NCBI RefSeq assembly: GCF_000315625.1
Contig: NW_005434558.1
Coordinates: forward strand, 1 to 58,841
Direction: 5' to 3'
Origin: Guillardia theta CCMP2712
Lineage: Eukaryota; Protista; Cryptophyta
Length of the DNA: 58,841 nt
Shown here: one piece after another, positions 4,588 to 55,848 of the stretch
Layout: each line of letters opens with the position of its first letter
How positions within the stretch are numbered: the stretch's first letter is position 1
Notes under the pieces: model-generated
Databases searched by the model: none
What the model was told of the DNA's origin: nothing
Seen by the model: the letters and a program-made list of their open reading frames with translations, nothing else
Position numbers and translations under genes: made by a program

Positions 4588-5162
4588 TTTCAAGGGGATA
4601 TCAAATGATTTGGAAATTCTATCATGTTTTGCCATGAAACGTTGTATTTTTTCAAACCATTTGATTCATAACCCTCGTAAAGCTTGATCCAAATAGGGGT
4701 ACATGAAGAGGTTCAGTTCGCAGATACTTTTGAAATGATCTCGAAGTGGTTTTGTAGGCCGCCCCTCGTCGATGTCAAACGGTCTGTCTTGCCTACTTGG
4801 GCTTGACTCAGTTTTCATCCCCTGACTTGCTTGACCGCGGTGGCAGAGACTCTCACTAAGTCATGACTGAGCTAGTGCGACTGATATGTGGAGGAGTTGA
4901 AGAACGACATCATGGCATCGACATCGACGATACTGACATCACGGTCGAGAAACTGCAAGGAGGGAGAGGGAAGCGTTGAAGAAGCGCGGCGTAGGAGAGT
5001 AGTTGCGATGCAGGAAGTGAGGATGGTATGGGGATGAGGATTATTATTGAGGATATTGGACGAGCAAGGAAGTTACAATCCCGGCAGTTTCGAGCCTTCA
5101 AGGACTGATGATGGAGCGGCCAAGGCCCGAATAATGCAGTAAGATGCAGAGCTTTCTCTGCT
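4588..5162 (+). repeat. Diverged dispersed repeat, copy A (copy B at 11662-12506)
   Basis: Shared blocks such as GTTCAGTTCGCAGATACTTTTGAAATGATCTCGAA, GTAGGAGAGTAGTTGCGATGCAGGAAGTGAGGATGGTATGGGGATGAGGA and CCAAGGCCCGAATAATGCAGTAAGA occur in the same order and orientation at both loci. Confidence 0.85.
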
Positions 5163-6029
5163 GAAGGCTTCAAATCATGATAAAGGTTTTCAACTGCTCG
5201 AATCTGCTCAGAGATCACTGAGAGAGACGAGATAACCAGCATTACAACTGACGGTGGCCAGTGTCATTATCTTTTCGGTTTACACTAACTATAACAACAA
5301 TCAACGGAGAAGAAGAAAATAGTGACAGCAAGGACTTCTAAATGGATTGCGACAAGGAAACAGCTGAACAGAAATCGAAAACGAACTTGAAGTCAGTTTG
5401 TGATGTAAAGATTTAAACGACAATCCACGTTATCAAAGGAGATGCAAGAATGCAAACAGTACGAAAGAGTAATTGCTGTAGACGCAGGCAGAAAGGGTGA
5501 TAATATCGGCAGTTGAACTCGGAGAAGACCAACAAACAAAGCGAAGATATCAGTCTTCGAGAAAACAATATTATCACGAGTCATATTTCGATCGCAACAG
5601 AAACCAACAGAAGAAGCGGGACCGGGATATTCTCCAGGGATTCTCAAGATAGACATGCAATCCCGCAACATTCGAAGAGTCAGTCGACAGATTTATCCGA
5701 CGAATGCAGTTGAAAGAGTCGACGATGGCCAGGGCTAACAGATCAATCTTCTGCAGCTAAAGGAGGCATCAATCAGAATGATGACAAACTCATCTAAAAA
5801 CACTTTGCCGGCGGCGGGCCCGGCCGGCGGTTGCGCCCGGCCGGCATTGCGCCGGGTAAAGTTATGGAAATTTCTTTTCCCCTCGAATAAAAAAGGTGGG
5901 TTGGGAGAAATTTGGAGGGAAAGTTTCATATTTTTCCCGAAAACACGTCCAAATAAAGACAGCCCACGCCAGATTCCCTACTGGAACAATCCTGTGAACA
6001 TAATTTATTCATTGTTTTTGTTTTCGAAC

Positions 6030-9000
6030 ATGGCTTACAGTATGGCGGGGTTGTTGGGCATGGCAGTGTCTCTGGTATGCCTTGCGCCTCCTCCTGGCAT
6101 CGAAGCCTTTGCTCCCTACTTGCCTCTTGTACCCTCTCACAGACAGCTGCCCCTTGCTTGCAGCCAAAGGACGAGGAGCTCAGTCCGACCATCCCTGTCG
6201 AGGTACGTGAACGTGGAATGTGAGTTATGGCTGTAAGCGATGAGTATCACACGACAAGGTGGACATGCTGGGATACACATTCCACCCTTGATGTGCAGAC
6301 CATGAAGTAGAGGTGTATGAAGATGAAGAGAGGTGGGCATAGAATACAGTGGCACCATTGATTACGATGAGGAATGCCAGAGTAGCATTGGCGCAAGTTG
6401 TGCAGTATGCTTGTGAGGTTACCAACCTGTTAATGATTGTTTCTTTTCATCGACCAGGGCAGCAAAGCGTGAGTCGCAAGACGGGACAGACTCTTTGACT
6501 CCCCGTAACAAAGCCATTGAAGACGCAACCAAGAATTATGAGAAATTGAACCAAGAGTTGACAAACGCAATGAAAACTGGAGATCCGAGACTTTTGGAGC
6601 TTGACAATCAAGTGAAACAAAGTAAGCTTGTACTGATATTTGCAAGGTCAAGCACAGAACTTTCGGAGGCTGAGAGCACAGGAGACGAGATCAAGATCGC
6701 CAGGGCTCGTCAGAGAGTCAATGAGGCGAAGCTAAGCTTGCTGGTGTGCCAGAGGGAGGGAGAGCTGTTGGAGGCTGAGGGCACAGGAGACGAGATCAAG
6801 ATCGCCAGGGCTCGTTTGAGAGTCAGGGAGGGAGAGCTGTTGGAGGCTGAGGGCACAGGAGGCGAGATCAAGATCGCCAGGGCTCGTCAGTCAGTCACGG
6901 AGGCGAAGCTAAGCTTGCTGGTGTGCCAGAGGGAGGGAGAGCTGTTGGAGGCTGAGGGCACAGGAGACGAGATCAANNNNNNNNNNNNNNNNNNNNNNNN
7001 NNNNNNNNNNNNNNNNNNNNNNNNNNNNNNNNNNNNNNNNNNNNNNNNNNNNNNNNNNNNNNNNNNNNNNNNNNNNNNNNNNNNGCTAAGCTTGCTGGTG
7101 TGCCAGAGGGAGGGAGAGCTGTTGGAGGCTGAGGGCACAGGAGACGAGATCAAGATCGCCAGGGCTCGTTTGAGAGTCAGGGAGGGAGAGCTGTTGGAGG
7201 CTGAGGGCACAGGAGACGAGATCAAGATCGCCAGGGCTCGTCAGAGAGTCAATGAGGCGAAGCTAAGCTTGCTGGTGTGCCAGAGGGAGGGAAAGCTGTT
7301 GGAGGCTGAGGGCACAAGAGACGAGATCAAGATCGCCAGGGCTCGTGTGCCAGAGGGAGGGAGAGCTGTTGGAGGCTGAGGGCACAGGAGACGAGATCAA
7401 GATCGCCAGGGCTCGTCAGAGAGTCAATGAGGCGAAGCTAAGCTCGCTGGTGTGCCAGAGGGAGGGAGAGCTGTTGGAGGCTGAGGGCACAGGAGACGAG
7501 ATCAAGATCGCCAGGGCTCGTCAGAGAGTCAATGAGGCGAAGCTAAGCTTGCTGGTGTGCCAGAGGGAGGGAGAGCTGTTGGAGGCTGAGGGCACAGGAG
7601 ACGAGATCAAGATCGCCAGGGCTCGTCAGAGAGTCAGGGAGGGAGAGCTGTTGGAGGCTGAGGGCACAGGAGACGAGATCAAGATCGCCAGGGCTCGTCA
7701 GAGAGTCAATGAGGCGAAGCTAAGCTTGCTGGTGTGCCAGAGGGAGGGAGAGCTGTTGGAGGCTGAGGGCACAGGAGACGAGATCAAGATCGCCAGGGCT
7801 CGTCAGAGAGTCAGGGAGGGAGAGCTGTTGGAGGCTGAGGGCACAGGAGACGAGATCAAGATCGCCAGGGCTCGTCAGAGAGTCAATGAGGCGAAGCTAA
7901 GCTTGCTGGTGTGCCAGAGGGAGGGAGAGCTGTTGGAGGCTGAGGGCACAGGAGACGAGATCAAGATCGCAAGGGCTACTTTCAATCTTGTGGATGTAGA
8001 TCTAGAGTTGTCAATTGCAACTGCCAGGAAAGCTTTGAGTCAAGCAAGAGACTTTGACCTTGTTCGTTGTCAGCGAGAGCTGGATGTAGTCACATACGCT
8101 CTTATCGCGCATCGAGGAGGGGACGGGGCAGGGAAATTTGTCGCAGGTAAGTTTGGAAGTGAACTTTTGAATGCTGTTGACTGATGCTTGCTAGGTATAC
8201 AAGATCTTGCCAACAGAGTCAACTTGAATGACGTCGTGTCGTCCTTGCAAGATTTACTTGAGGATTACCTTGACGTTGAATGGGGCTCGACATCATCAGG
8301 GGTGAAACCGAGCAAAGAATTCAGTGCCATGAATCCAATCGACGTAATTGTGCGGGAAGCACGTCGAGTCAAGGATGCTGTTTACTTGTGCATGATTGAA
8401 GCTTGTTCCGGCAGCGGAAAATCGCTTTGCGCTGCTGATTTCTTTGTTCGAAATTCAAAAGACTGCATGTACTTTCTCTTCAATCCCTCCCAGCAGGTCA
8501 GCAAGCAGAGCATATACCAGTGTGTAACAAGTATCACGAACCTCATGAGCATGGCCATAAATAGTGACCTTTGCTTGTTGGCAATGGCTTCAGGTCCCGA
8601 ATTGCGTACTGAAATGTTAACTGCGATAGATTTTGATGTCAAGACTAGTGGGCAGAAATGGCACGTGCTGGGAACTCTGGGCTACTTGTGGAATGAGACG
8701 AAGTCAGTTGCTCCAGTTTCTGTGGAGGAGGCCATGAAGTGGAGAAGGAGGTGGGTTCTTATAGATGAGACCATCCCACCTGATCCGCATAAGACCTATC
8801 TGTTCTCACCGTCGGCTAAGCTGGTACTGTATAAGAGGATTTTGACAAATGCAAAGATTCACTGTATCACGCTGGGGACGAATACTCTGGTCATGAATTT
8901 CAATCAGAACTCCAAGAGCTCTGACTATAGTCGCAATGAAAAGCGAAGAATGTACTGCTTTACACATCGCTCGCTTCCTCGATACGTGCCGTCATCGAGC

Positions 9001-10230
9001 AAGGACAAAGAAATATTGGAGAAGGTTTTCGGACAGGCTCATGTTCCTGTACTTCTGGACAACGTGAACCCATGGCTCTGCTCACTCTTCTTGAATCGCC
9101 TGAAGGATGAGAGTGAGACCGAACCATCATTGTGGATCCGAAAGATCTCGAGCTTGGTCCTGGAAGAAGCCAAGATGGAGAAACCGAGCTTAAGTGACGA
9201 ATCTATCTACTGCATGTTTCAAGTAGCTGCACATCAACCTGTCTCTCAGTTGCAGATCTCCAAAGGCTTTGCACAGTTGAACGTTTGGAAGGAGGACGTG
9301 CCTCCGCGAGGTAGTAGACAGACAATCGTTGCAATCTTGAAAAGCTCAAAGACAGAAGATTTGATAATCGAGGGAACTTCTCTCCCGCTGCTCACCTCGA
9401 GGTTCCCTTCTGCTGTGCATGATCCCATCACCATGGCTATTTGTGCGGGGGGAGGACAACCTTTCTCTGACCGATCAGCGCTGGAGGTCTTACAGACGAT
9501 CCATGAAGAGATGGCGAGTGGGAATGATCCTATAAGCGTGGATGCGTTCAAGCGAGATCCAAACGTGCTGGAGTCTTTCGGGGCAGTTGTGATGATGATC
9601 AGCAGCTGGTCTCTCCCGCAGGATCTTCTGAGAAACATCGCATTTCATTGCGGCATAACAGACGAGAGAAAAGTAGAACAAATCCTGGCTGCTGTCCCAA
9701 GCAAACAAGGCTTCATGCAGATTCTAGCTTCCTGCATGTCCAACTTAGTTCCTGTGCGGTTGGGCGAGGAGAATGAACTTGCCGGGGTCTTGGGTTTCTA
9801 CACTCGTAACCGGGACAGAGACCGCAGAGGTGGGACCTTCGCTGGACCAAGTTCTGCGCACTTGAAGGGAGGAATAGAATTCAAGAATTGGAATTCTTCA
9901 CTTTCATCGACACAGTTGTCCAGCGCAATCTCTGGTCTGTTGGAGCGTAACTTGGACATTATTGTGTGTATGGTGCCGGGGTTAACAGAAAATGCTCTTG
10001 AGGGATGTATGAGGACATTGAGCCGCAAGAGCGAGTGGCTGGTGCTGCATCACACGGATACAGGCTGGACCGCCTCTTCATTTGGAGCGGTCGCATCTGA
10101 GGACATGAATGCCAGTCAAGACGAGAAAGTCGTAGATGGTCAAGACAAGACTGATGCTGTCAGGCAACAAATTTTGATGGTCATCGAGATTGGAACAAAG
10201 ACTCTTCCATTCTGCGGAGTGAGGATGTAG
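6030..10230 (+). CDS. Crinkler-like (CR-type) P-loop NTPase + REase-like protein with N-terminal bipartite (signal + plastid transit) presequence and helical repeats; frameshift and gap in the repeats
   Basis: Exon 1 is 6030-6202 (MAYSMAGLLGMAVSLVCLAPPPGIEAFAP...). GT-AG intron 6203-6457 joins in frame to ORF 6495. GT-AG intron 8147-8194 joins in frame to ORF 8188-10230. Walker A is EACSGSGKS, Walker B is WVLIDE, then LGTNT; the C-terminus has NVLESF...DRDRRGGTF...GIEFKN (ExK). A 35-nt deletion near 7346 shifts the frame. Confidence 0.75.
6660..7980 (+). repeat. Coding tandem repeat of mixed 105-bp (35 aa) and 72-bp (24 aa) units
   Basis: EGELLEAEGTGDEIKIARARQRV followed by either NEAKLSLLVCQR or R. 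Units are near-identical at DNA level; the array spans an assembly gap. Confidence 0.95.
6977..7084. other. Assembly gap (N run) inside the repeat array
   Basis: Run of N; repeat copy number and frame across it are unknown. Confidence 0.99.
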
Positions 10231-10880
10231 GAGCGGGCACAACTTGGGTCGACAAGGTTGATCGAGGCTGCAAACTTTGCTGTTGCAATGAAATTGTGTG
10301 TAGCTAGAGGATGAAGAGGCGGTGTTGAGAGTAAAGCTTTTTTTGGCTGGAGGAGGGGCCGTTACTGCATGCTCACCCCAAGATTGCATAGAATCGAGCT
10401 CATTCTCGCTCCCCCCGCGTCACACTTGATTCTTCATTCTGGCAGGCCTTGAGAGCGAAACACTGTCTCGATGAACCTCTTCGAGCTGCTTGCTCGGATG
10501 TGATCGGTTTGCGACAAGGGGTCAGGTAGACTCTCAGACTCCCAGTGAGCTCATCAATGAAGGGAAGAATGGAATCGTTGTTATCTTGGGTTCGTGGGAG
10601 CCCAGCCAGCAAGTCCAACCTGACGACTTCAAAGCGCGTCACGGCGCAGACATTGGAAGATGTTGCGACTGAATTCGCACGTAGCGTAGGCGGCTTGGAT
10701 CTGTTCGGAAGTTGTAACAGGGCCACTGGGGTCGAGGGAGAAACTTCATCTTGACCGCTGAGAGCGTCAGGAGGCTTGTCAATCTGTGAACTTTTGACGT
10801 GGCAGCGCTCAGTAATGGCGCACTTGCTGCTACCGAGGGTCAGTGCCAACCAACGAATCAGGCGACTGCTGAGTTCCTCA

Positions 10881-11586
10881 GCTCTTGTCGCTCATGGCAG
10901 CTCTTGTCGCTCACGGCAGCTCTTGTCGCTCACGGCAGCTCTTGTCGCTCATGGCAGCTCTTGTCGCTCATGGCAGCTCTTGTCGCTCAGGGCAGCTCTT
11001 GTCGCTCACGGCAGCTCTTGTCGCTCATGGCAGCTCTTGTCGCTCATGGCAGCTCTTGTCGCTCACGGCAGCTCTTGTCGCTCAGGGCAGCTCTTGTCGC
11101 TCATGGCAGCTCTTGTCGCTCATGGCAGCTCTTGTCGCTCATGGCAGCTCTTGTCGCTCACGGCAGCTCTTGTCGCTCATGGCAGCTCTTGTCGCTCATG
11201 GCAGCTCTTGTCGCTCATGGCAGCTCTTGTCGCTCAGGGCAGCTCTTGTCGCTCACGGCAGCTCTTGTCGCTCATGGCAGCTCTTGTCGCTCATGGCAGC
11301 TCTTGTCGCTCATGGCAGCTCTTGTCGCTCATGGCAGCTCTTGTCGCTCATGGCAGCTCTTGTCGCTCATGGCAGCTCTTGTCGCTCATGGCAGCTCTTG
11401 TCGCTCATGGCAGCTCTTGTCGCTCATGGCAGCTCTTGTCGCTCACGGCAGCTCTTGTCGCTCATGGCAGCTCTTGTCGCTCATGGCAGCTCTTGTCGCT
11501 CATGGCAGCTCTTGTCGCTCATGGCAGCTCTTGTCGCTCATGGCAGCTCTTGTCGCTCATGGCAGCTCTTGTCGCTCATGGCAGCT
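10881..11586. repeat. 19-bp minisatellite (GCTCTTGTCGCTCA[T/C/G]GGCA), about 37 copies
   Basis: Direct inspection; only one position varies and there are no spacers. Confidence 0.97.
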
Positions 11587-11661: not shown

Positions 11662-12506
11662 TTTCAAGGGGTTATCGAACTATTTGGAAAATCAAATCAT
11701 AGTTTGCCATGAAACGATGTATGTTTCAAACCATTCGACTCATAACCCTCGTAAGGCACTATGTAAATTGGGGTACATCAAGAAGTTCAGTTCGCAGATA
11801 CTTTTGAAATGATCTCGAAATAGTTTTGTAGGCCCCTCGCAGCCAGGCAGTTCAACGGCAGGCGGACAGCAGAATGGAGGCAGCAGCATGGGAGTGTGCT
11901 CGGCGGCTATTCGTGACATGCGATCGCAACATGTTGGGAAAGCTTAGCTTGTGAGTTCAACTTCAAGATGATGAATTGCAATGCTTCTCAGCAGCAGCTC
12001 CAGGCTCTGTTGCGGTGTTGTGTGTTGTTTTGTTTGTCCGTCCCTTTTCTCAATGTCAAACAGTCTGTCTTGCCGCACTTGGACCTCAGTTTTTCATCCC
12101 CTGACTTGACCGCTTCACTGTGGCAGAGACGAGCTAGTGCGATATGTGGAGGAGTTGAAGAAGATGGACATCATCGACATCGACGAGACTTACATCGTCG
12201 AGAAACTGCAAGAAGGGCAGCTGGAGCAAATCAAGTGAGTGGCAAAACGAATCATACGGTACTGCAGGCGGGCAGGAGGGAGAGTGAAGCCTTGAAGAAG
12301 CGTTCATATGGAGGCAGGAGGACAGAATTGAGGGAGGATGGCGTAGGAGAGTAGTTGCGATGCAGGAAGTGAGGATGGTATGGGGATGAGGAGTAGTATT
12401 GAGAATATTGGACGAGCAAGGAATTCACAATCCCGGCAGTTTCGAGCAATTCAAGGAATGGAGCCAAGGCCCGAATAATGCAGTAAGACGGAGAACTTTC
12501 TCTGCT
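11662..12506 (+). repeat. Diverged dispersed repeat, copy B (longer than copy A at 4588-5162)
   Basis: Collinear with 4588-5162 but with extra internal segments; retains coding-like fragments (ELVRYVEELKKMDIIDIDETYIVEKLQ). Confidence 0.85.
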
Positions 12507-15815: not shown

Positions 15816-16280
15816 GGAGGCTTGAACCGTGACCACCCCGGGCCCGGCGGCGCCGGGCAGGGGCCGGCACTGCCGGCCGGGCGCCCGGCGCGCACTGCCG
15901 GGGGGCGGCCGCGCACTCGGAGGCTGCGGCCCGGGCGCAGAGGCCGCGTGATGCCAGTGACAAGCCGCGGGCCGCGTGACCGTCACGACTGAGGGGACTC
16001 GGCTCGAAGAATGTGACGGCGCCGCCGGCGGCCGCAAGGGCCGGGGAGGCTCAGCGTGTGCCACGCACGGTACTACGGTACGGTCCGATCCTGACTCCGT
16101 GGCAGCAGGCGGGCACTCAGAAAGCCCGGCGCCCGGCCGCGGGCCCTTGCGGCCGGAACTTCGGAACTTGAGTGATGAGTTCACGGCATGCACCGTCACG
16201 CGTGACTGAGCCTGTTCCGATCATGATTGATTGGCGGGCCCACCGCAGTGACTCTGTGACTCGGCGGATTCAAGCCTGTG
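15600..16280. repeat. GC-rich patch of short palindromic motifs (also about 34780-35110, 39330-39900, 43680-44100)
   Basis: Dense CCGG, GGCC, GCGGC, CAGTG/CACTG, ACGGT, GAGTC/GACTC, TCGGA motifs; no credible ORF. Confidence 0.7.
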
Positions 16281-33574: not shown

Positions 33575-34221
33575 ATGATGGGAAGACAGGTTCTTGCTGC
33601 CCTCGCACTCCTACCTCTTGCTTGGTGCTTCCAAGCTCCTACCAGCTTTCTTCCTGGAACCAGGGGCATCACTCAGCAAACATGCGCTACTCTCAGGCCT
33701 GCAGTGCTTGGGAAGATGCAGCTCGAGGCTCCCGAAAGGATTAAGATACCTGACACTTTCAACCCGGCGGAATGGGGCGTTGGGGGCGGAAAGGGAGGCT
33801 TCGGTGATGGGCTTGGTGGGTTCAAGGTTCCTGATAGCTTCAACCCAGCGGAGATGGAGAAAGAAAGGCAGGGTGGAAGAACAGCTGTGATGGACAGGCC
33901 TTCAGACAAGACTGATCCTGGGAAGAAGTACAAGGTTCTGTTGTTCAACGATGACAAGAACACAAGGCAGTACGTTATTGACACCCTAATGAAGTACATC
34001 CCTGGTATGACAGCAGACAAGGTAAGATGACGAATCTCTTCTTCATTCCGCTTGTATTTGGTTTTTCCGTGTTAACGTTTTGTCCTCAGGCTAAGGAGAT
34101 CACTGTAGCAGCGCACAACACTGGCATGGCCATCGTTGGCGTGTGGATGTACGAGATGGCAGAGGCATACAGTGATGTGCTCCGCAGTGCAGGCTTGCGG
34201 AGTGACATTGATCCTGAGTAA
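33575..34221 (+). CDS. clpS: Plastid-targeted ATP-dependent Clp protease adaptor ClpS (2 exons; intron 34022-34089)
   Basis: Signal peptide ending AWC|F plus transit peptide; KYKVLLFNDDKNTRQYVIDTL...AKEITVAAHNTGMAIVGVWMYEMAEAY. Confidence 0.92.
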
Positions 34222-34340: not shown

Positions 34341-35118
34341 TCGAGCCACCCATGGAGGCAGTTGAAGTTTATCTTTCCTCCGCCGTACCACAAACCGTTT
34401 TCGAACTTGGGAAGTTGGTCATCCCATGTGCAATGGGCAGGCGATCACTGATACACCGCAGCAGCGCTTCCTTAGTCCCTTACAACTCAGAATCTTGACG
34501 CTCATTCTCTGTCCTCGTTCGGCTCGCCGTTTCATGATGTGTCAGGTGTGATCCGAGTTTCAGCTGAGCGTGCTCGTGAGACTCAGAGGATCAAAGATCG
34601 CCGCCGGTACGGTCACACTGCCGCCGTGAGTCGCGATGGCATGATGATGGAGAAGGCGATGCAATTACCACAACTTCAATGAAAAGTAATACTCCCGCAA
34701 ACGATGTTGCTTGCAAGGCTGTGATCAGTCACATGTCACTGGGCCAGGCTCAGGCTACTTACGGTAGTAGGCCGCTTGTACGGTCATGATTGCGGCTTGC
34801 CGGAACTCGGAGACGCCCGGCCGGGCGCCGCGCCGGCCGGCCCGGGCCCGGGGTGCGGGCCCGGCCACCGGGGCCCGGGCCCGGGCCTCCCGACCCGTAC
34901 CCGGTGACCGTACCGCCGGAGTCACGGGCCCGGGGCAGTCTGGCACGCGGCCAGTCACTGTGCGGTGGCGCGGCAAGTTGTTGTTGCAAACCACGGTGAC
35001 TCGTCGGAGTCGGACCCGCCGAAAAAAAGGCTAGTACGGTGCGGTTCTGATGCTGAGGCTACAATCGGCGCAGCCGCGGGCCGGGGGCGAACTGGCACGG
35101 CGCAGTCACGCGGCTCGC

Positions 35119-39325: not shown

Positions 39326-40167
39326 CTCGCACAAACTCTGGCAAACTTGAAGGATCCGGCGGCCGGGGCAGCAGAATATGGTTTGAATTTCTGGCACAGT
39401 GCACTCAGTGCCGAACTTCCCGGCAACTTTCCCTGCAGTTCAACGGTTCAACGGTTCGCCGCGCGAACTTTGAAGGCTTCCAAAGCTGGCACCGTGTGAA
39501 GTGACGGCGGTTTGACCCGATGATCATCGGATTGGATTAACCACGCGGCGCGGCCCTATCGGCCCCGAGGCCGCCGCGCGGACGGTGAGGCCCGCAGGGC
39601 CTCTCGGATCCGGCCCGGCGGACTCGGATTCCTCACACGGTCCGCGGCGTCACAGTGCCAGTAAGGTCGGAGATCCTGTGTGTCACACCGTCACCTTGAG
39701 AGTCCGGCGCCCGGGCCGCCGGGCGGCCGGGCCCGCCGCCCGGAGTCACGAGTCGCCGCCGCGGGCCCGGCGGCCTCGGATCGGACTGTCCGCCGACCGT
39801 ACGGGGGCCGGGCCCGCCGGGCGATCATAGTAACCGTCGATGAGTGATTGATAGTTACTAGTGAAAGTTGAAGTCAGGGCCCGGCCTGGTCACACTAATA
39901 AATCATCATGAGAACCAAAGCCTCAGTACAGACGGGTTCAGTCAACACCCCATAAAAGTTTGTCACAGTTTTTTCCCGAGGACTGCCCCCCTTTTTTTTG
40001 CGTGGTTGGAGTAGCGGCTTTCGCTGCCTTTTTTCATTTCCTAGTATTATATTGAGGCGGGTTTGTAGGCTTTATCATCGTCCTCCTTTGTTTGCTCCGG
40101 TTTGCCTTTTCTTTTCAGTCAATAAAAAGCTTTAAAAAATAATAGAGTTGGGAGTTGGTTCCAAAAC

Positions 40168-42816
40168 ATGCCGAAGCGCCGAAGGACCGAGGATCCAGAC
40201 GACAGCAAGAGAGACTTAGTGAGCTTGCTGCTCGAGTCTGTCTCACAAACTCATGATATGATCAAGAGCTGCAAAGGCAAGGAGCAGATGCAATGGCTTA
40301 CTACACAACTTGAGAAGAAGGAGCTCGAGCTGAAGAATGCGGTTGAGAAGAAGGAGCTCGAGCAGAAGTATGCGGTTGAGAAGAAGGAGCTCGAGCAGAA
40401 GATCGAGAGCTGCGAAAACCAGGAGCAGAAGCAATGGCTGACTACACAACTTGAGAAGAAGGAGCTCGAGCTGAAGAATGCGGTTGAGAAGAAGGAGCTC
40501 GAGCAGAAGTATGCGGTTGAGAAGAAGGAGCTCGAGCAGAAGATCGAGAGCTGCGAAAACCAGGAGCAGAAGCAATGGCTGACTACACAACTTGAGAAGA
40601 AGGAGCTCGAGCAGAAGTATGCGGTTGAGAAGAAGGAGCTCGAGCAGAAGTATGCGGTTGAGAAGAAGGAGCGCGAGCAGAAGTATGCGGTTGAGAAGAA
40701 GGAGCTCGAGCAGAAGATCGAGAGCTGCGAAAACCAGGAGCAGAAGCGAAGGCTGACTACACAACTTGAGAAGAAGGAGCTCGAGCTGAAGAATGCGGTT
40801 GAGAAGAAGGAGCTCGAGCAGAAGTATGCGGTTGAGAAGAAGGAGCTCGAGCAGAAGTATGCGGTTGAGAAGAAGGAGCTCGAGCAGAAGATCGAGAGCT
40901 GCGAAGACCAGGAGCAGAAGCGAAGGCTGACTACACAACTTGAGAAGAAGGAGCTCGAGCAGAAGTATGCGGTTGAGAAGAAGGAGCTCGAGCAGAAGTA
41001 TGCGGTTGAGAAGAAGGAGCGCGAGCAGAAGTATGCGGTTGAGAAGAAGGAGCTCGAGCAGAAGATCGAGAGCTGCAAAGACCAGGAGCAGAAGCGAAGG
41101 CTGACTACACAACTTGAGACGAAGGAGCTCGAGCTGAAGAATGCGGTTGAGACCAAGGAGCGCGAGCTCAAAGTGGAGAAGAAGGAGCTCGAGCAGAAAT
41201 TCTTGATTCACAATTATATGGCTGGAGGTCGCTTACAGACAGGAGAAATAATGAAGTCGACTTCCGTGATTGATGCAATGGAGGATCGTTTTGTGTACGA
41301 TGAAACGAAGTTGTTTTTGGATATATCGGCAGACAGTGGGAAGGAGTCTGGGTTACGAGCATTTGAGGACGAGGATGTAAAGGAGAAGGGCATGAGAATT
41401 TTCAGCAGAAAGGGACTTCGGGAGCAGATGGACTTCATGCAAAAAAGAGTCATGCAAGCAGGAAGTTTGGGCTGGGTGTTGGGGGCACCAGGGACGGGAA
41501 AGTCTCTTACAGGCCTTGCATTCGCACTCTCCATTGACAGGGAGGTCTGGGGGGTGAGTTGGATGCATATCTCTCCTTATCCTGCAAAGGCTGTTCAGTG
41601 GATCGCTGCAAGGAAAACTGTATATGAAGCTGAATTGCAGACGACAAATGATGACTTTCTGTATGCTCTTCTGAATGGTGTGGATGATGATTCTCAGCAT
41701 GTATTCGTACTGGATGGTTTCCTGCAAGACTCGCACAAAATGTTGCAGCATATGTTGATGCGATGGCGTGAAAAAAAGAAAGAGAATAGAAGAGTGCTCT
41801 TTATTTCATCGATGCAGACCAGGTACAAGGTGAAGTGGGAAGATGATCAGGTTTGGGGCGTGGAGGTATTTCTCCTTGAGTCATGGAGACTGGAAGAGTA
41901 TCAAGAGGCAGTGATGGACGACCTGTTCTACTCTTCTGTTGAAAGGAAATTAGATGCAAACTTGTCTCGAGGATCGGTTGCTCAACGGTCATTTTCGAGC
42001 AATCTGAGCCGAGAAGATCGAATACTGTCCAAGTATTATTATGCAGGAGGATCATCAAGATACATGTTTCAGATGAGTAGTCAACAGATTATCGACGACG
42101 TTTCTAACACTGTCAAAAACGTGGGATTTCTTGAAACTCTCTCCACAAAGATAGGGCAGTACAGTGGGGCTGCAATCAATCGACTCTTTTCGATATACAA
42201 GGATCAAGACAAGTCAGAATATACTGTATTCTTAAGCAGGTATCTTACAGAGAAGATTTGCGTTCAAACAGGGTGTGAACAATTTACACGGTCTTTGGTG
42301 CATTTCTGCACAATGCATCATCCAGTTGCCAAAGGACTCATGCTTGAAGATTTGTTCTTCATGGTGGTACATCACCAAGGTTTGGCATTGCACGTGCGAG
42401 GTGAAGACGCGCAAGAAGCTTGGCAGGCTGCCCCTGTCGTGACTTGCTTGATACCTCTTACGAAAGGAGTGGTGGAGAGTCAGAGCTGCGACTTTTGGGT
42501 GCGACCACCTGATTTCAACCATCCAGGATATGATGGGGTGTTTCTTAGTAGAAGCAGGAAATTAGTACGGTTTGTACAAGTAACCGCAGCAAAAGATCAT
42601 GATCTGAAACTACAATATTTCAAGGAACTCATTGACAATCTTGTTTTAGTAGGATTTCCGGTTCAACGAATAGAAATTTGTTTCATCGTGCTCCGTAAGG
42701 ATCTAGAGTGTTTCAAAGTTTCGAAGGTCCTTGGTCAAGGATCTCTTGAGCAATATGGTTTTGCGAAAGGAAAGGAGCGAAGATCTATCAGGGTGATGGG
42801 TGTTGAGCTTATCTAA
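40168..42816 (+). CDS. Crinkler-like (CR-type) P-loop NTPase + PD-(D/E)xK-type REase protein with NLS-like N-terminus and coiled-coil repeats, intronless, 882 aa
   Basis: MPKRRR; Walker A GAPGTGKS; Walker B VFVLDG; KYYYAGGSSRYMF; GLMLEDLFF; PPDFNHPGYDGVF...VRFVQVT...HDLKLQY. These motifs are characteristic of Crinkler NTPase-REase modules. Confidence 0.88.
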   Translation: MPKRRRTEDPDDSKRDLVSLLLESVSQTHDMIKSCKGKEQMQWLTTQLEKKELELKNAVEKKELEQKYAVEKKELEQKIESCENQEQKQWLTTQLEKKELELKNAVEKKELEQKYAVEKKELEQKIESCENQEQKQWLTTQLEKKELEQKYAVEKKELEQKYAVEKKEREQKYAVEKKELEQKIESCENQEQKRRLTTQLEKKELELKNAVEKKELEQKYAVEKKELEQKYAVEKKELEQKIESCEDQEQKRRLTTQLEKKELEQKYAVEKKELEQKYAVEKKEREQKYAVEKKELEQKIESCKDQEQKRRLTTQLETKELELKNAVETKERELKVEKKELEQKFLIHNYMAGGRLQTGEIMKSTSVIDAMEDRFVYDETKLFLDISADSGKESGLRAFEDEDVKEKGMRIFSRKGLREQMDFMQKRVMQAGSLGWVLGAPGTGKSLTGLAFALSIDREVWGVSWMHISPYPAKAVQWIAARKTVYEAELQTTNDDFLYALLNGVDDDSQHVFVLDGFLQDSHKMLQHMLMRWREKKKENRRVLFISSMQTRYKVKWEDDQVWGVEVFLLESWRLEEYQEAVMDDLFYSSVERKLDANLSRGSVAQRSFSSNLSREDRILSKYYYAGGSSRYMFQMSSQQIIDDVSNTVKNVGFLETLSTKIGQYSGAAINRLFSIYKDQDKSEYTVFLSRYLTEKICVQTGCEQFTRSLVHFCTMHHPVAKGLMLEDLFFMVVHHQGLALHVRGEDAQEAWQAAPVVTCLIPLTKGVVESQSCDFWVRPPDFNHPGYDGVFLSRSRKLVRFVQVTAAKDHDLKLQYFKELIDNLVLVGFPVQRIEICFIVLRKDLECFKVSKVLGQGSLEQYGFAKGKERRSIRVMGVELI
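40261..41199 (+). repeat. Coding tandem repeat of mixed 33-bp (11 aa) and 75-bp (25 aa) units
   Basis: EKKELEQKYAV / EKKELELKNAV units interleaved with EKKELEQKIESCENQEQKQWLTTQL. Confidence 0.95.
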
Positions 42817-50000: not shown

Positions 50001-53000
50001 GAAACAAGTCACGGTGAAGCCAGTGAAGAACAAAGAAACCCTTCCATCACTGGAACACCACGTCAATGAGAGCAAACAGGCGAAACAATTGGAGATTATC
50101 AAGGAAGCAGGTGAAAATAAGGTGGAACAGGCTAAGCATGGATCAAACATGTTTGACGATTCCGATGAAAGATCCACACATCAGCAGATATCAAAAACAA
50201 ATTCCTCCAACGTCAAACAATCAAAAGCAAGACAGGAAGTTCAAAAAGCTTCAATGAAAACTAAAGATAGTAACAAGCTGCAATCCGTCGGAAAACAACA
50301 AAGACATCCTGAAAATACCAGTCAGACAGTGACAAAAGCGCGATTAAAAGCCTCATCCAATGAGCAAGCTATCCAAACGAAGTCGGAGGAGCCGGCCGAT
50401 GCCGGAGCAGCCGACGAGACGGTCGCTAAGGCCGAGGGGGTCGAGGAGGCAGCGGGAGGGGCCGAGGCCGAGGCGAAGGAGGAGGGGGCGCCGCTGCCGG
50501 CTGAGCAGCAGCATGAGGAGGAGGCGGAGCAGCCGCCGCAGCCGCAGCCGCAGCCGCAGCCGCAGCCGCAGCCGCAGGAGCAGGCGGCGGAGGAGGGGGC
50601 GGCCGGCGAGAGAGAGACGAGGCTGTCAGAGGAGGAGGCGGCGGTACGCATCCAGGCGCGGTCGAGGGGCATGGCAGGACGGGAGCGGGCGAGGAAGGCC
50701 AAGGAGGCCAAGGCGGCGGGGCAGGCCGCCTCCGGGGAGGAGGGCGAGGGCGAGGGCGGCAAGTCAGGAGAGGAGGCGGACGGGACGGGAGCAGGGGAGG
50801 TACAGGCCAGCAGCCCGGAGGCAGCAGCGGCAGCCGCAGGAGAAGCCGGAGCAGGAGGCGAGGGAGGCGATGCTGCCAGGACGGAGGCAGAGGAGCCGGC
50901 CGATGCCGGAGCAGCCGACGAGACGGTCGCCAAGGCCGAGGGGGTCGAGGAGGCAGCGGGAGGGGCCGAGGCCGAGGCGAAGGAGGAGGGGGCGCCGCTG
51001 CTGGCTGAGCAGCAGCATTAGGAGGTGGCGGAGCTGCCGCCGCAGCCGCAGCCGCAGGAGCAGGCGGCGGAGGAGGGGGCGGCCGGCGAGAGAGAGACGA
51101 GGCTGTCAGAGGAGGAGGCGGCGGTACGCATCCAGGCGCGGTCGAGGGGCATGGCAGGACGGGAGCGGGCGAGGAAGGCCAAGGAGGCCAAGGCGGCGGG
51201 GCAGGCCGTCTCCGGGGAGGAGGGCGAGGGCGAGGGCGGCAAGTCAGGAGAGGAGGCGGACGGGACGGGAGCAGGGGAGGTACAGGCCAGCAGCCCGGAG
51301 GCAGCAGCGGCAGCCGCAGGAGAAGCCGGAGCAGGAGGCGAGGGAGGCGATGCTGCCAGGACGGAGGCAGAGGAGCCGGCCGATGCCGGAGCAGCCGACG
51401 AGACGGTCGCCAAGGCCGAGGGGGTCGAGGAGGCAGCGGGAGGGGCCGAGGCCGAGGCGAAGGAGGAGGGGGCGCCGCTGCCGGCTGAGCAGCAGCATGA
51501 GGAGGAGGCGGAGCAGCCGCCGCAGCCGCAGCCGCAGGAGCAGGCGGCGGAGGAGGGGGCGGCCGGCGAGAGAGAGACGAGGCTGTCAGAGGAGGAGGCG
51601 GCGGTACGCATCCAGGCGCGGTCGAGGGGCATGGCAGGACGGGAGCGGGCGAGGAAGGCCAAGGAGGCCAAGGCGGCGGGGCAGGCCGTCTCCGGGGAGG
51701 AGGGCGAGGGCGAGGGCGGCAAGTCAGGAGAGGAGGCGGACGGGACGGGAGCAGGGGAGGTACAGGCCAGCAGCCCGGAGGCAGCAGCGGCAGCCGCAGG
51801 AGAAGCCGGAGCAGGAGGCGAGGGAGGCGATGCTGCCAGGACGGAGGCAGAGGAGCCGGCCGATGCCGGAGCAGCCGACGAGACGGTCGCCAAGGCCGAG
51901 GGGGTCGAGGAGGCAGCGGGAGGGGCCGAGGCCGAGGCGAAGGAGGAGGGGGCGCCGCTGCCGGCTGAGCAGCAGCATGAGGAGGAGGCGGAGCAGCCGC
52001 CGCAGCCGCAGCCGCAGCCGCAGGAGCAGGCGGCGGAGCAGGCGGCGGAGGAGGGGGCGGCCGGCGAGAGAGAGACGAGGCTGTCAGAGGAGGAGGCGGC
52101 GGTACGCATCCAGGCGCGGTCGAGGGGCATGGCAGGACGGGAGCGGGCGAGGAAGGCCAAGGAGGCCAAGGCGGCGGGGCAGGCCGTCTCCGGGGAGGAG
52201 GGCGAGGGCGAGGGCGGCAAGTCAGGAGAGGAGGCGGACGGGACGGGAGCAGGGGAGGTACAGGCCAGCAGCCCGGAGGCAGCAGCGGCAGCCGCAGGAG
52301 AAGCCGGAGCAGGAGGCGAGGGAGGCGATGCTGCCAGGACGGAGGCAGAGGAGCCGGCCGATGCCGGAGCAGCCGACGAGACGGTCGCCAAGGCCGAGGG
52401 GGTCGAGGAGGCAGCGGGAGGGGCCGAGGCCGAGGCGAAGGAGGAGGGGGCGCCGCTGCCGGCTGAGCAGCAGCATGAGGAGGAGGCGGAGCAGCCGCCG
52501 CAGCCGCAGCCGCAGCCGCAGGAGCAGGCGGCGGAGCAGGCGGCGGAGGAGGGGGCGGCCGGCGAGAGAGAGACGAGGCTGTCAGAGGAGGAGGCGGCGG
52601 TACGCATCCAGGCGCGGTCGAGGGGCATGGCAGGACGGGAGCGGGCGAGGAAGGCCAAGGAGGCCAAGGCGGCGGGGCAGGCCGTCTCCGGGGAGGAGGG
52701 CGAGGGCGAGGGCGGCAAGTCAGGAGAGGAGGCGGACGGGACGGGAGCAGGGGAGGTACAGGCCAGCAGCCCGGAGGCAGCAGCGGCAGCCGCAGGAGAA
52801 GCCGGAGCAGGAGGCGAGGGAGGCGATGCTGCCAGGACGGAGGCAGAGGAGCCGGCCGATGCCGGAGCAGCCGACGAGACGGTCGCCAAGGCCGAGGGGG
52901 TCGAGGAGGCAGCGGGAGGGGCCGAGGCCGAGGCGAAGGAGGAGGGGGCGCCGCTGCCGGCTGAGCAGCAGCATGAGGAGGAGGCGGAGCAGCCGCCGCA

Positions 53001-55848
53001 GCCGCAGCCGCAGGAGCAGGCGGCGGAGGAGGGGGCGGCCGGCGAGAGAGAGACGAGGCTGTCAGAGGAGGAGGCGGCGGTACGCATCCAGGCGCGGTCG
53101 AGGGGCATGGCAGGACGGGAGCGGGCGAGGAAGGCCAAGGAGGCCAAGGCGGCGGGGCAGGCCGTCTCCGGGGAGGAGGGCGAGGGCGAGGGCGGCAAGT
53201 CAGGAGAGGAGGCGGACGGGACGGGAGCAGGGGAGGTACAGGCCAGCAGCCCGGAGGCAGCAGCGGCAGCCGCAGGAGAAGCCGGAGCAGGAGGCGAGGG
53301 AGGCGATGCTGCCAGGACGGAGGCAGAGGAGCCGGCCGATGCCGGAGCAGCCGACGAGACGGTCGCCAAGGCCTAGGGGGTCGAGGAGGCAGCGGGAGGG
53401 GCCGAGGCCGAGGCGAAGGAGGAGGGGGCGCCGCTGCCGGCTGAGCAGCAGCATGAGGAGGAGGCGGAGCAGCCGCCGCAGCCGCAGCCGCAGCCGCAGG
53501 AGCAGGTGGCGGAGCAGGCGGCGGAGGAGGGGGCGGCCGGCGAGAGAGAGACGAGGCTGTCAGAGGAGGAGGCGGCGGTACGCATCCAGGCGCGGTCGAG
53601 GGGCATGGCAGGACGGGAGCGGGCGAGGAAGGCCAAGGAGGCCAAGGCGGCGGGGCAGGCCGTCTCCGGGGAGGAGGGCGAGGGCGAGGGCGGCAAGTCA
53701 GGAGAGGAGGCGGACGGGACGGGAGCAGGGGAGGTACAGGCCAGCAGCCCGGAGGCAGCAGCGGCAGCCGCAGGAGAAGCCGGAGCAGGAGGCGAGGGAG
53801 GCGATGCTGCCAGGACGGAGGCAGAGGAGCCGGCCGATGCCGGAGCAGCCGACGAGACGGTCGCCAAGGCCGAGGGGGTCGAGGAGGCAGCGGGAGGGGC
53901 CGAGGCCGAGGCGAAGGAGGAGGGGGCGCCGCTGCCGGCTGAGCAGCAGCATGAGGAGGAGGCGGAGCAGCCGCCGCAGCCGCAGCCGCAGCCGCAGCCG
54001 CAGGAGCAGGCGGCGGAGGAGGGGGCGGCCGGCGAGAGAGAGACGAGGCTGTCAGAGGAGGAGGCGGCGGTACGCATCCAGGCGCGGTCGAGGGGCATGG
54101 CAGGACGGGAGCGGGCGAGGAAGGCCAAGGAGGCCAAGGCGGCGGGGCAGGCCGCCTCCGGGGAGGGCGGGTGGGCTAACGAGGGATCGGGAGAAATCAA
54201 ATCATCGCAAGGTCTTTTGTTTGATTCAGCTGGGAAGCCTGCCAGATCAAATTCTTCAGTCACTGATGAGGGTGGTGGATTTGAGGAGCTTTGCATGTCA
54301 CAGGATCATGTCTTTGATTTTCAACTCTTCCTTTCTTCCTTTCATAATTTTCAATCTCAGCTGGATGAGTTTCTCTTTTCATCTTCAGATGTTACAAATC
54401 TCGAAGAGCTCAAGAAATCCTTCCAGCTCTGCCACTCTCTTATGTCGTCAGCTGGACCCGAGCTGGTCCGTGGGAAGTTTGTCGACCAAGGGATAGCCAC
54501 CACTCCGGCCCTCGAGTTTCTCTTTAGGGACGTCAAGGAAACCGATTTTGACAAGCTGTTGAAACTGAAGTCAACGGAGCGGAAGGTAAGCATCCTCGCC
54601 AACTGATCTCTTTACTTTCTCCCTCCGTTGCGCCGCTTTCACAGTCATTCCCCCCCATCACACACACTCTCATCCTCGTCATCAGCTGCACCCCCAATGA
54701 CTTCCTGCAGGAACGCAAGAGCTACTTCCATCAGGTCCTCAAGCAGCGTCCTTCACCTTGCCGCACTTCCCGCAGCGAGGGCTATCAATCTCCCAGCAGA
54801 TCGCCGCAGAAGGATGGAGAGACGCCGGAGGAAGTGCTGCCGTTTCCTCGATCCCTCTCAGTCATTCTTGCTGATCCTGCTGAATCCTCCTCGGAGGAAG
54901 CGAACGGAGGCCAACGGGAGGGTGCGGCGAGCTCGGCTGCACCTGTCTCTGCTCCTCCCTCTCTTTCTCTCTTCTCCTCCCTCCCTTCCGTCATCTCCTG
55001 GAATGCGCCACTGCGCAGCCTCCAGGCATCTGCAGCTCACCCGCCATCCCAGGGCCCTGGGGCAGGTGGCGAGGAGACGCGAGGGAAGGGCGAGGCAGCA
55101 GCACAGGATGCCAAACTAGACGAGCCCCAGAACCAACCCCAGCTGAAAGATGCTGGGGTTGCCGTCGAGTCTCCAGCTCTCTGCGGTCTGCCATCGGCCG
55201 CCACCTGGTCAGTGAGCTCTGACGCCTGCCAAGCAGCTGGGAAGGAGCTGGAGACCGTGACCCGTATGGACCACCGCCAACTGCTTGCCGAGATCCTCGC
55301 CGCCATTGAGTCCCTCCAACAGAAGAAGCGACTCCCCCGTCCCAACAGGTGCTCCCCCAACTTTCCCCTCCCCTGTCCTTGTCCACTTGCTCTGGCTGCC
55401 TCTACCTGTGCCGGCTCGTCTCCTCTCCCCTCCTCCTTCTCCTCCTCGCTCGGCTCATCATCGTGCTGCAGCGCCGCTGGACTGCTCGAGCGGCTCAGGA
55501 ATGGGAAGCTGAAGGGGAAGGATGCGATCCAGTGGTACTCCAAACGACCGGCTGCTATAGTGAAGGCCCTCCGGTCCCAGGTAACGTTCGCTCTCCTCCT
55601 CCTCCACCTCCTCTTCCGCCCCCTCCTTCCCATCTGCCTGCTTCACATCTTCTTCTCCTCGCCTTTGTCCCCTTTCCTGCCTCCCTTCTCAGGAAGACCC
55701 GACAGCTCGTTCCTCCTTCACTGCTCCCCGTCTTGCTGCTCTGCCGTTGACTGCTGTCTCTGACTTTTTCCCCCAGCGGGCTCAGTCTGCTGCCATACTG
55801 CAGGCCCACGTCCGTTGCCTCCTGTCCTCTCCTACTCCGACTCGGTAG
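47030..55848 (+). CDS. Very large multi-exon protein with helical N-terminal region and acidic IQ-motif tandem repeats; two in-frame TAG codons in the array
   Basis: Consecutive same-strand exons; 8 copies of AAVRIQARSRGMAGRERAR plus a terminal ILQAHVRCLL. TAG at 51019-51021 and 53374-53376. The true start may lie upstream (about 46620). Confidence 0.7.
50385..54170 (+). repeat. Coding tandem repeat of about 480-498 bp, about 8 units
   Basis: Near-identical units differing in (CAGCCG)n length and an EQAA duplication. Confidence 0.97.

Follow-up and report, generated by a model that had tools for sequence, protein, structure and literature searches.

Does a cryptophyte alga send a toxin-type nuclease into its own endosymbiont? 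The question is raised by a gene at positions 6030-10230 (+ strand) of contig NW_005434558.1 of Guillardia theta CCMP2712; this whole 58,841-nt stretch of DNA is referred to as the window. A first-pass annotation had proposed that the gene joins a plastid-import presequence to an NTPase-restriction endonuclease (REase) protein of the Crinkler (CR) type. In our analysis the gene appears to be part of a cryptophyte-specific expansion of Crinkler/RHS-type proteins, laid out as a helical-repeat stalk, a STAND/Cdc6-like AAA+ NTPase and a PD-(D/E)xK nuclease, and the clade to which it belongs would have gained a bipartite leader encoded by a first exon of its own. We give an even chance to the reading that the product of this clade enters the stroma by import and that its intact form cuts DNA under ATP gating, most plausibly against invading or selfish DNA; import, nuclease activity and biological role are each what we infer. 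Taken as a group, Crinkler/RHS-type nucleases have probably been re-addressed repeatedly to the plastid complex, and probably for defence.

The window copy comprises three exons and two GT-AG introns, and each exon was translated and searched separately. Exon 1 runs for 173 nt from the ATG at 6030, in phase 2, and ends in AG/GTACGT. It opens with a signal-peptide-like segment of 26 codons (6030..6107), which is kept in the orthologous locus L035 and would be cleaved after IEA; next comes a transit-peptide-like segment (6108..6202) with a +1 Phe, rich in S, R and P and containing no D/E. In-frame ATGs are also present at 6042 and 6060, within the signal-peptide-like segment; another in-frame ATG upstream, at 5778, was rejected as a start, as L035 has a stop in that frame. 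The hydrophobic signal, the IEA/FAP site and the acid-free transit-like peptide described by the first-pass annotation were all found. The signal peptide was judged by hydropathy and the -3/-1 rule, and its core reaches a best 9-residue hydropathy of 2.6; the first 32 post-cleavage residues contain 0 D/E. The +1 residue is one of F/W/Y/L, and the transit peptide scores 0.79 in the published ASAFind-2 diatom matrix, above the cut-off of 0.31. A degenerate ubiquitin-like header was considered for exon 1 and rejected, there being no Pfam match.

Is this leader a coding exon at all? Exon 1 aligns at the DNA level with exon 1 of the paralogue L003 (z 10.3, 0/300 shuffles), with the same donor and phase, while intron 1 cannot be aligned between the two copies (z 0.9), whose exons 3 are separated by a dS of ~0.87. 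The retention of exon 1 while intron 1 diverged at this distance argues for a selected coding exon; at the protein level, a BLAST comparison of exon 1 with the P0003 leader gave no significant match. Relative to L035, exon 1 shows a pN/pS of 0.26 (p=0.07) and an identical cleavage site, and the A/F junction is also found in the internally deleted copy L032. In these comparisons the leader has the marks of a coding exon under selection that specifies a predicted stromal-type bipartite signal. The three expected plastid proteins of the window said to use the same design do have such leaders, at 33575 (+), 23816 (+) and 27100 (-, upstream of HAD-hydrolase exons); the first is ClpS. In a crude null, 523 stretches of 50 codons starting with ATG were taken from the window, and 7 loci showed the design; four of these are those of the first-pass annotation, which leaves about 3 chance loci among ~520 ATGs.

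Intron 1 (6203..6457; GT-AG, 255 nt, phase 2) has a donor whose position and phase are common to L003, L033, L035 and L043, and a second same-phase donor at 6233; its acceptor (6457) sets exon 2 in the repeat frame. Exon 2 (6458..8146) encodes a helical linker and then tandem 24/35-aa helical repeats (72/105 nt). The predicted 48-nt intron 2 (8147..8194; GT-AG, phase 1) joins the end of exon 2 to exon 3 and is borne out by its recurrence at the same place in L002-L006, L008, L035 (47 nt), L036, L038, L040 and L041; it is read through in the transcript-derived paralogue proteins P0008 and P0030.

What does the leader carry? Exon 3 (679 codons) begins with an AAA+/STAND-like P-loop NTPase and helical domains (8195..9690), assigned by fold and motifs. 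The Walker A (ACSGSGKS, 8395-8424), Walker B (hhhDE, 8752-8769), LGTN sensor (8872-8883) and SR motif (8929-8934) are all conserved across the family alignment. The AlphaFold model has a pLDDT of 80.6 and a pTM of 0.82; its NTPase part retrieves CED-4 (E 4e-5), TnsC, Apaf-1 and Cdc6 by Foldseek, and NLR/Cdc6/TnsC by VIA, at Z about 8-8.7. A PD-(D/E)xK (REase)-like domain follows (9739..10230), with a family motif R-D-G...E-x-K, of which the E-x-K (9877-9885) is intact. Folded alone, it reaches a pLDDT of 82; VIA ranks REase-fold chains top (AF1548 at Z 5.5, LlaBIII, AspBHI, Avs3, NucS and MspJI, with Rpb5 also listed), and the Atlas shape search matches it to Mrr_cat clusters. These models predict two folds for exon 3, a STAND/Cdc6-like AAA+ domain and a PD-(D/E)xK-like domain, the C-terminal REase fold having moderate support.

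The nearest neighbours in ESM feature space are oomycete and fungal proteins (0.98) and PF20147-bearing Crinkler clusters (0.93, 0.91). Pfam, PADLOC and PDB sequence searches name no family for exon 3, returning only a weak AAA_22 match in 3/21 members; the Pfam matches of exon 2 are of helical-repeat types only, and the LxLFLAK and HVLVxxP motifs are absent from the sequence. Exon 3 resembles a CR NTPase+REase protein without a canonical CRN header, and is a putative member of a described CR family. The Crinkler-type assignment of the first-pass annotation stands at the level of the family, by fold, motifs and language-model neighbours.

The family is large. Across the 87-Mb G. theta assembly (669 contigs) we counted ~30 near-full and 25 partial matches, with dN/dS of 0.33-0.70. 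Among named proteins, the homologues of exon 3 come from Guillardia theta, Hanusia phi and Rhodomonas salina; a profile search extended no further than cryptophyte and environmental relatives, and no relative was found on viral contigs. Leaders, read within 1.5 kb of exon 3, are of three types. The window or stromal type (a) is found in the window copy, L035, L003, L043, the stub L032 and the leader+repeat genes L033/L034. Type (b) is an unrelated periplastid type ending in LR[MI][RGQ]GG (L002, L004, L005, L014, L017 and L038; signal-like in L002/L004/L005). Type (c) is a basic N-terminus without a signal peptide (L015, L016, L020, L021, L024 and L029). In the ASAFind-2 matrix file for the periplastid compartment (PPC), an LRxRGG ending is present in 8/20 of the G. 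theta entries read, among them EF-1alpha, 14-3-3, Cdc48 and ubiquitin (PMC12136025 App. S3). The full-length transcript L046, from the most distant clade and clustering with Rhodomonas salina entries, encodes an in-frame signal peptide, a ~45-residue spacer ending in RLRGG, a KRP…RKRP stretch resembling a nuclear localization signal (NLS) and an intact nuclease motif, and is the best candidate for a nucleomorph-targeted nuclease. The gene called on it (protein P0071, L046:148-480) begins at a downstream Met and misses the signal peptide. Periplastid-type leaders occur independently in paralogues and in a second cryptophyte genus, which strengthens the idea of delivery to the endosymbiont compartment. 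In a quick maximum-likelihood tree, types (a) and (b) are neighbours and (b) recurs in a distant clade, a pattern that fits leader shuffling.

How would such a protein reach its target and act? A cryptophyte protein with a signal peptide and a transit peptide reaches the periplastid space, and passes on into the stroma if its +1 residue is aromatic (PMC4494062, PMC12136025). We propose the same route here because it is the established one in cryptophytes and diatoms: the signal peptide would direct the protein to the chloroplast endoplasmic reticulum and the transit peptide across the periplastid membrane, and the +1 Phe would take it onward into the stroma, where the leader would be removed. 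On the model of STAND and CR proteins, its cutting of DNA would then be gated by ATP-dependent oligomerisation. Because other clades carry LRxRGG or basic signal-less leaders, the family is probably spread over the stroma, the periplastid space/nucleomorph and the nucleus/cytosol, where its most likely role would be defence against foreign or selfish DNA.

Several observations weigh against stromal import of an active nuclease. Every VIA Z for the REase-like domain lies below 8 (maximum 5.5); Foldseek on the REase-like domain alone gave no significant match, and neither Pfam nor PADLOC provides an HMM link to a named CR family. In the window copy the first catalytic Asp is replaced by Gly (codon 9829-9831), a position that is Asp in 29/29 other aligned members, and the nuclease motif is accordingly not intact in this copy. 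Two runs contain 1.00 of the sampled exon 3 words, which weakly suggests that the Gly is real; the window copy is predicted to be nuclease-dead. As to the leader, ~62% of the matrix score is owed to the +1 Phe alone, and the sister paralogue L003 has a +1 Leu and scores only 0.25, so on this comparison the +1 Phe is recent and restricted to the clade of the window copy, L035 and L032.

The integrity of the window copy is a further point against. A 70-nt repeat unit (7323..7392), 35 nt short of the 105-nt unit where other units are of 72 or 105 nt, shifts the repeat out of frame 0 into frame 1 and brings in a stop at 7377-7379, regardless of the length of the assembly gap within the exon 2 repeat. 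The window copy, as assembled, is therefore not the single in-frame gene that had been described. The 70-nt unit is either a real deletion or an assembly error. The gap itself (6977..7084, 108 letters, unfilled) matches a landmark distance measured within intact repeat units (one 72-nt unit and 36 nt more); its flanks are therefore in register with the repeat and compatible with continuity.

Transcript evidence at the first splice junction is no more favourable. Reads were placed only on window positions 5500-6690, to avoid the long repeat, and among them the spliced joint from 6202 to 6458 was not found, at very thin coverage: a 764-million-letter sample of raw RNA yielded a single read. One contig (depth 37.8), from a run taken as RNA by guess, reads 6065-6232 straight through the proposed donor of intron 1. 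The same contig ends directly before the GTAAG donor at 6233, which is in phase with that at 6203; splicing there would leave the frame unchanged and lengthen the product by ten residues. It shows exon 1 sequence in an RNA-like run and neither proves nor excludes splicing. The best explanation of 26 inverted nt at its start is a fold-back artefact arising at an ATGGC microhomology. Runs from four studies, likewise taken as RNA by guess, contain 0.5-1.0 of the sampled words of exon 3, and a search for spliced N-terminal fragments returned solely exon 2 of the orthologue L035. Of the 255-nt intron, the GT-AG borders and the acceptor that gives the repeat frame stand, the joint is absent among the reads, and we infer its splicing by comparison among paralogues.

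The orthologue L035 offers an intact counterpart. It is a gap-free metagenome sequence whose exon 3 is 91% identical to that of the window copy in protein and ~96% in nucleotides, and the two copies have the ATG, the cleavage site and the splice donors and acceptors in common. Its exon 2 is open, gap-free and in the correct phase over 596 nt with only a few repeat units, and it keeps the D, E and K of the nuclease motif. The dN/dS between the two is 0.65, and the terminal branch is longer in the window copy (0.058 vs 0.029; 25 vs 13 derived changes). The window copy is probably decaying or nuclease-dead, while L035 is intact.

Could the leader work and the destination be another? The protein might act in the periplastid compartment on nucleomorph DNA, or leave by the secretory route to poison competitors, prey or parasites outside. 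This would suit the PPC-type leaders of sister clades, the L003 clade with its +1 Leu and its LRISG junction, and the usual part of CR proteins as exported conflict effectors (PMC5289972); moreover, one residue can switch the destination between PPC and stroma (PMC12136025). However, the +1 Phe, the Pro at +3 and the acid-free basic transit peptide of the window leader match the stromal class, and 'high-confidence' ASAFind calls have a specificity of 0.97 in G. theta (PMC4329603); the window leader, furthermore, lacks an LRxRGG-like ending and is unrelated to the leaders that have one. We regard this destination as unlikely, though it survives best among the alternatives.

A slightly less probable account is that leaders were captured neutrally, by exon shuffling, in a selfish duplicating family and were kept as a form of detoxification that removes the protein from cytosol and nucleus, with no organelle function and with copies that decay. 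The leaders of G. theta are of at least two unrelated kinds, and the Rhodomonas-type transcript has a further one, there followed by an NLS-like stretch; this speaks against neutral capture, as does the retention of the leader and all catalytic residues in L035; an active nuclease sent into a DNA-containing organelle would also be poor detoxification, and no terminal repeats or shared ends were seen across the family in 1.5-kb flanks per paralogue. Its strength lies in the tandem and dispersed copies, the broken and internally deleted ones, the leader+repeat genes without a nearby NTPase exon, the lost catalytic Asp of the window copy and its dN/dS of 0.65 against L035. The least probable alternative, that the window copy is a transcribed pseudogene with intron 1 retained, the repeat frameshifted and any protein starting downstream without a leader, draws on the unspliced contig, the single raw read, the frameshift, the dead active site and the longer branch with its excess of derived changes. 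Yet that contig stops exactly before the same-phase donor, and its run may have been made from DNA; the frameshift, sited in a tandem repeat at 260 nt from an assembly gap, could have arisen in assembly; and the account bears on the window copy only and is compatible with our preferred reading of the family.

Stromal import of an ATP-gated nuclease thus remains our preferred reading for the clade. A bolder extension, which we hold only tentatively, is that one family of host-encoded ATP-gated nucleases serves as an immune or genome-control system for nucleus, nucleomorph/periplastid space and stroma by way of swapped first exons. For the genome-control and uniparental DNA elimination roles suggested by the first-pass annotation we found no direct evidence, and nothing specific to uniparental elimination. 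If it was indeed re-addressed several times to the stroma and to the nucleomorph compartment, the family would be the first candidate, as far as our literature search reached, for a host toxin-type nuclease acting inside a secondary endosymbiont, and would bear on host defence against, or control of, endosymbiont genomes.

Incomplete and rearranged copies are found elsewhere in the family. In L032 (G000:C74:340932-341252, -) the first ~90 nt of exon 1 are joined straight to the 3' end of the gene and its flank. L033 and L034 (G000:C207, C239) consist of a shortened leader and the same helical repeat, with no NTPase exon match nearby, and related matches lie on C122, C403 and C294. Exon-3 units are duplicated head-to-tail without header exons of their own in L027, L028 and L030 (G000:C155, C456); L011 and L012 (G000:C41) have stops in exon 3 and a (GAT)n-type microsatellite where exon 2 is expected. 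On a metagenome contig, ephrin-receptor-like and TIR_2 Pfam matches lie directly downstream of a family member (L039:2215-3069).

Around the gene, the 3' flank (10231..10437, +) is common only to L035 (~97%) and the deleted copy L032. An element end at 10437 was rejected: similarity to L035 stops there at a dispersed repeat starting at ~10441. This repeat (10441-10830) has ~15 genome copies and is followed by a 19-nt tandem array (10879-11586); an interrupted direct repeat (73-86% identity) at 4588-5162 and 11662-12506 brackets the gene region. GC-rich, partly palindromic short elements occur at 5807-5853, ~180 nt upstream of the ATG at 6030, and at 15876-15917, 34839-34887 and 39706-39738, the last upstream of an open reading frame (ORF) at 40126-42813 (+). 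This single, unrelated ORF has a basic start (MPKRRR), coiled-coil repeats, a weak AAA_22 match and a C-terminal REase-like motif, and looks like another Crinkler-type NTPase-nuclease, with a putative nuclear-type header; no profile similarity to the family of the window gene was found. Further along, an array of ~7.7 copies of a 498-nt unit (50386-54166) lies inside a long acidic repeat ORF, with IQ-like motifs by eye.

How does the gene compare with known systems? CR proteins, described as exported or nuclear conflict effectors, are already known from free-living eukaryotes; our literature search met no organelle-targeted example. CR NTPase+REase proteins were reportedly described by Zhang et al. 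2016, as summarised in a review (PMC5289972). Our literature search found nothing linking Crinkler proteins with cryptophytes or plastids, and nothing linking RLRGG with plastid leaders. The review treats the REase of CR proteins as the probable toxin, with the NTPase regulating it; for the headers of CRNs it rules out signal peptides and names a single hydrophobic one, that of Angomonas (PMC5289972). The present family is alike in having a P-loop NTPase followed by a REase fold behind a variable N-terminal header, and in its lineage-specific expansion with broken copies in free-living eukaryotes (PMC5289972). It differs in its header, which consists of a signal and transit leader, encoded by a separate exon, and a helical repeat instead of a ubiquitin-like LxLFLAK/DWL domain, and in lacking an HMM-level match to the named CR families. 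With Avs3/Avs4 and the TnsC/Cdc6-type ATPases it shares a related NTPase fold and, in the case of Avs3/4, a REase-fold effector; here, in contrast, the nuclease is C-terminal, and there is neither a TPR sensor nor a PADLOC match. The LRLRGG-like periplastid leaders of G. theta are found on L002, L004, L005, L014, L017, L038 and L046, and not on the window copy. The window leader instead resembles bipartite AXAF/ASAFAP plastid targeting (PMC4329603, PMC12136025, PMC4494062) in its signal peptide, small -3/-1 residues, +1 Phe and acid-free basic transit peptide; it differs in its passenger, a conflict-type ATPase-nuclease whose targeting is predicted from sequence.

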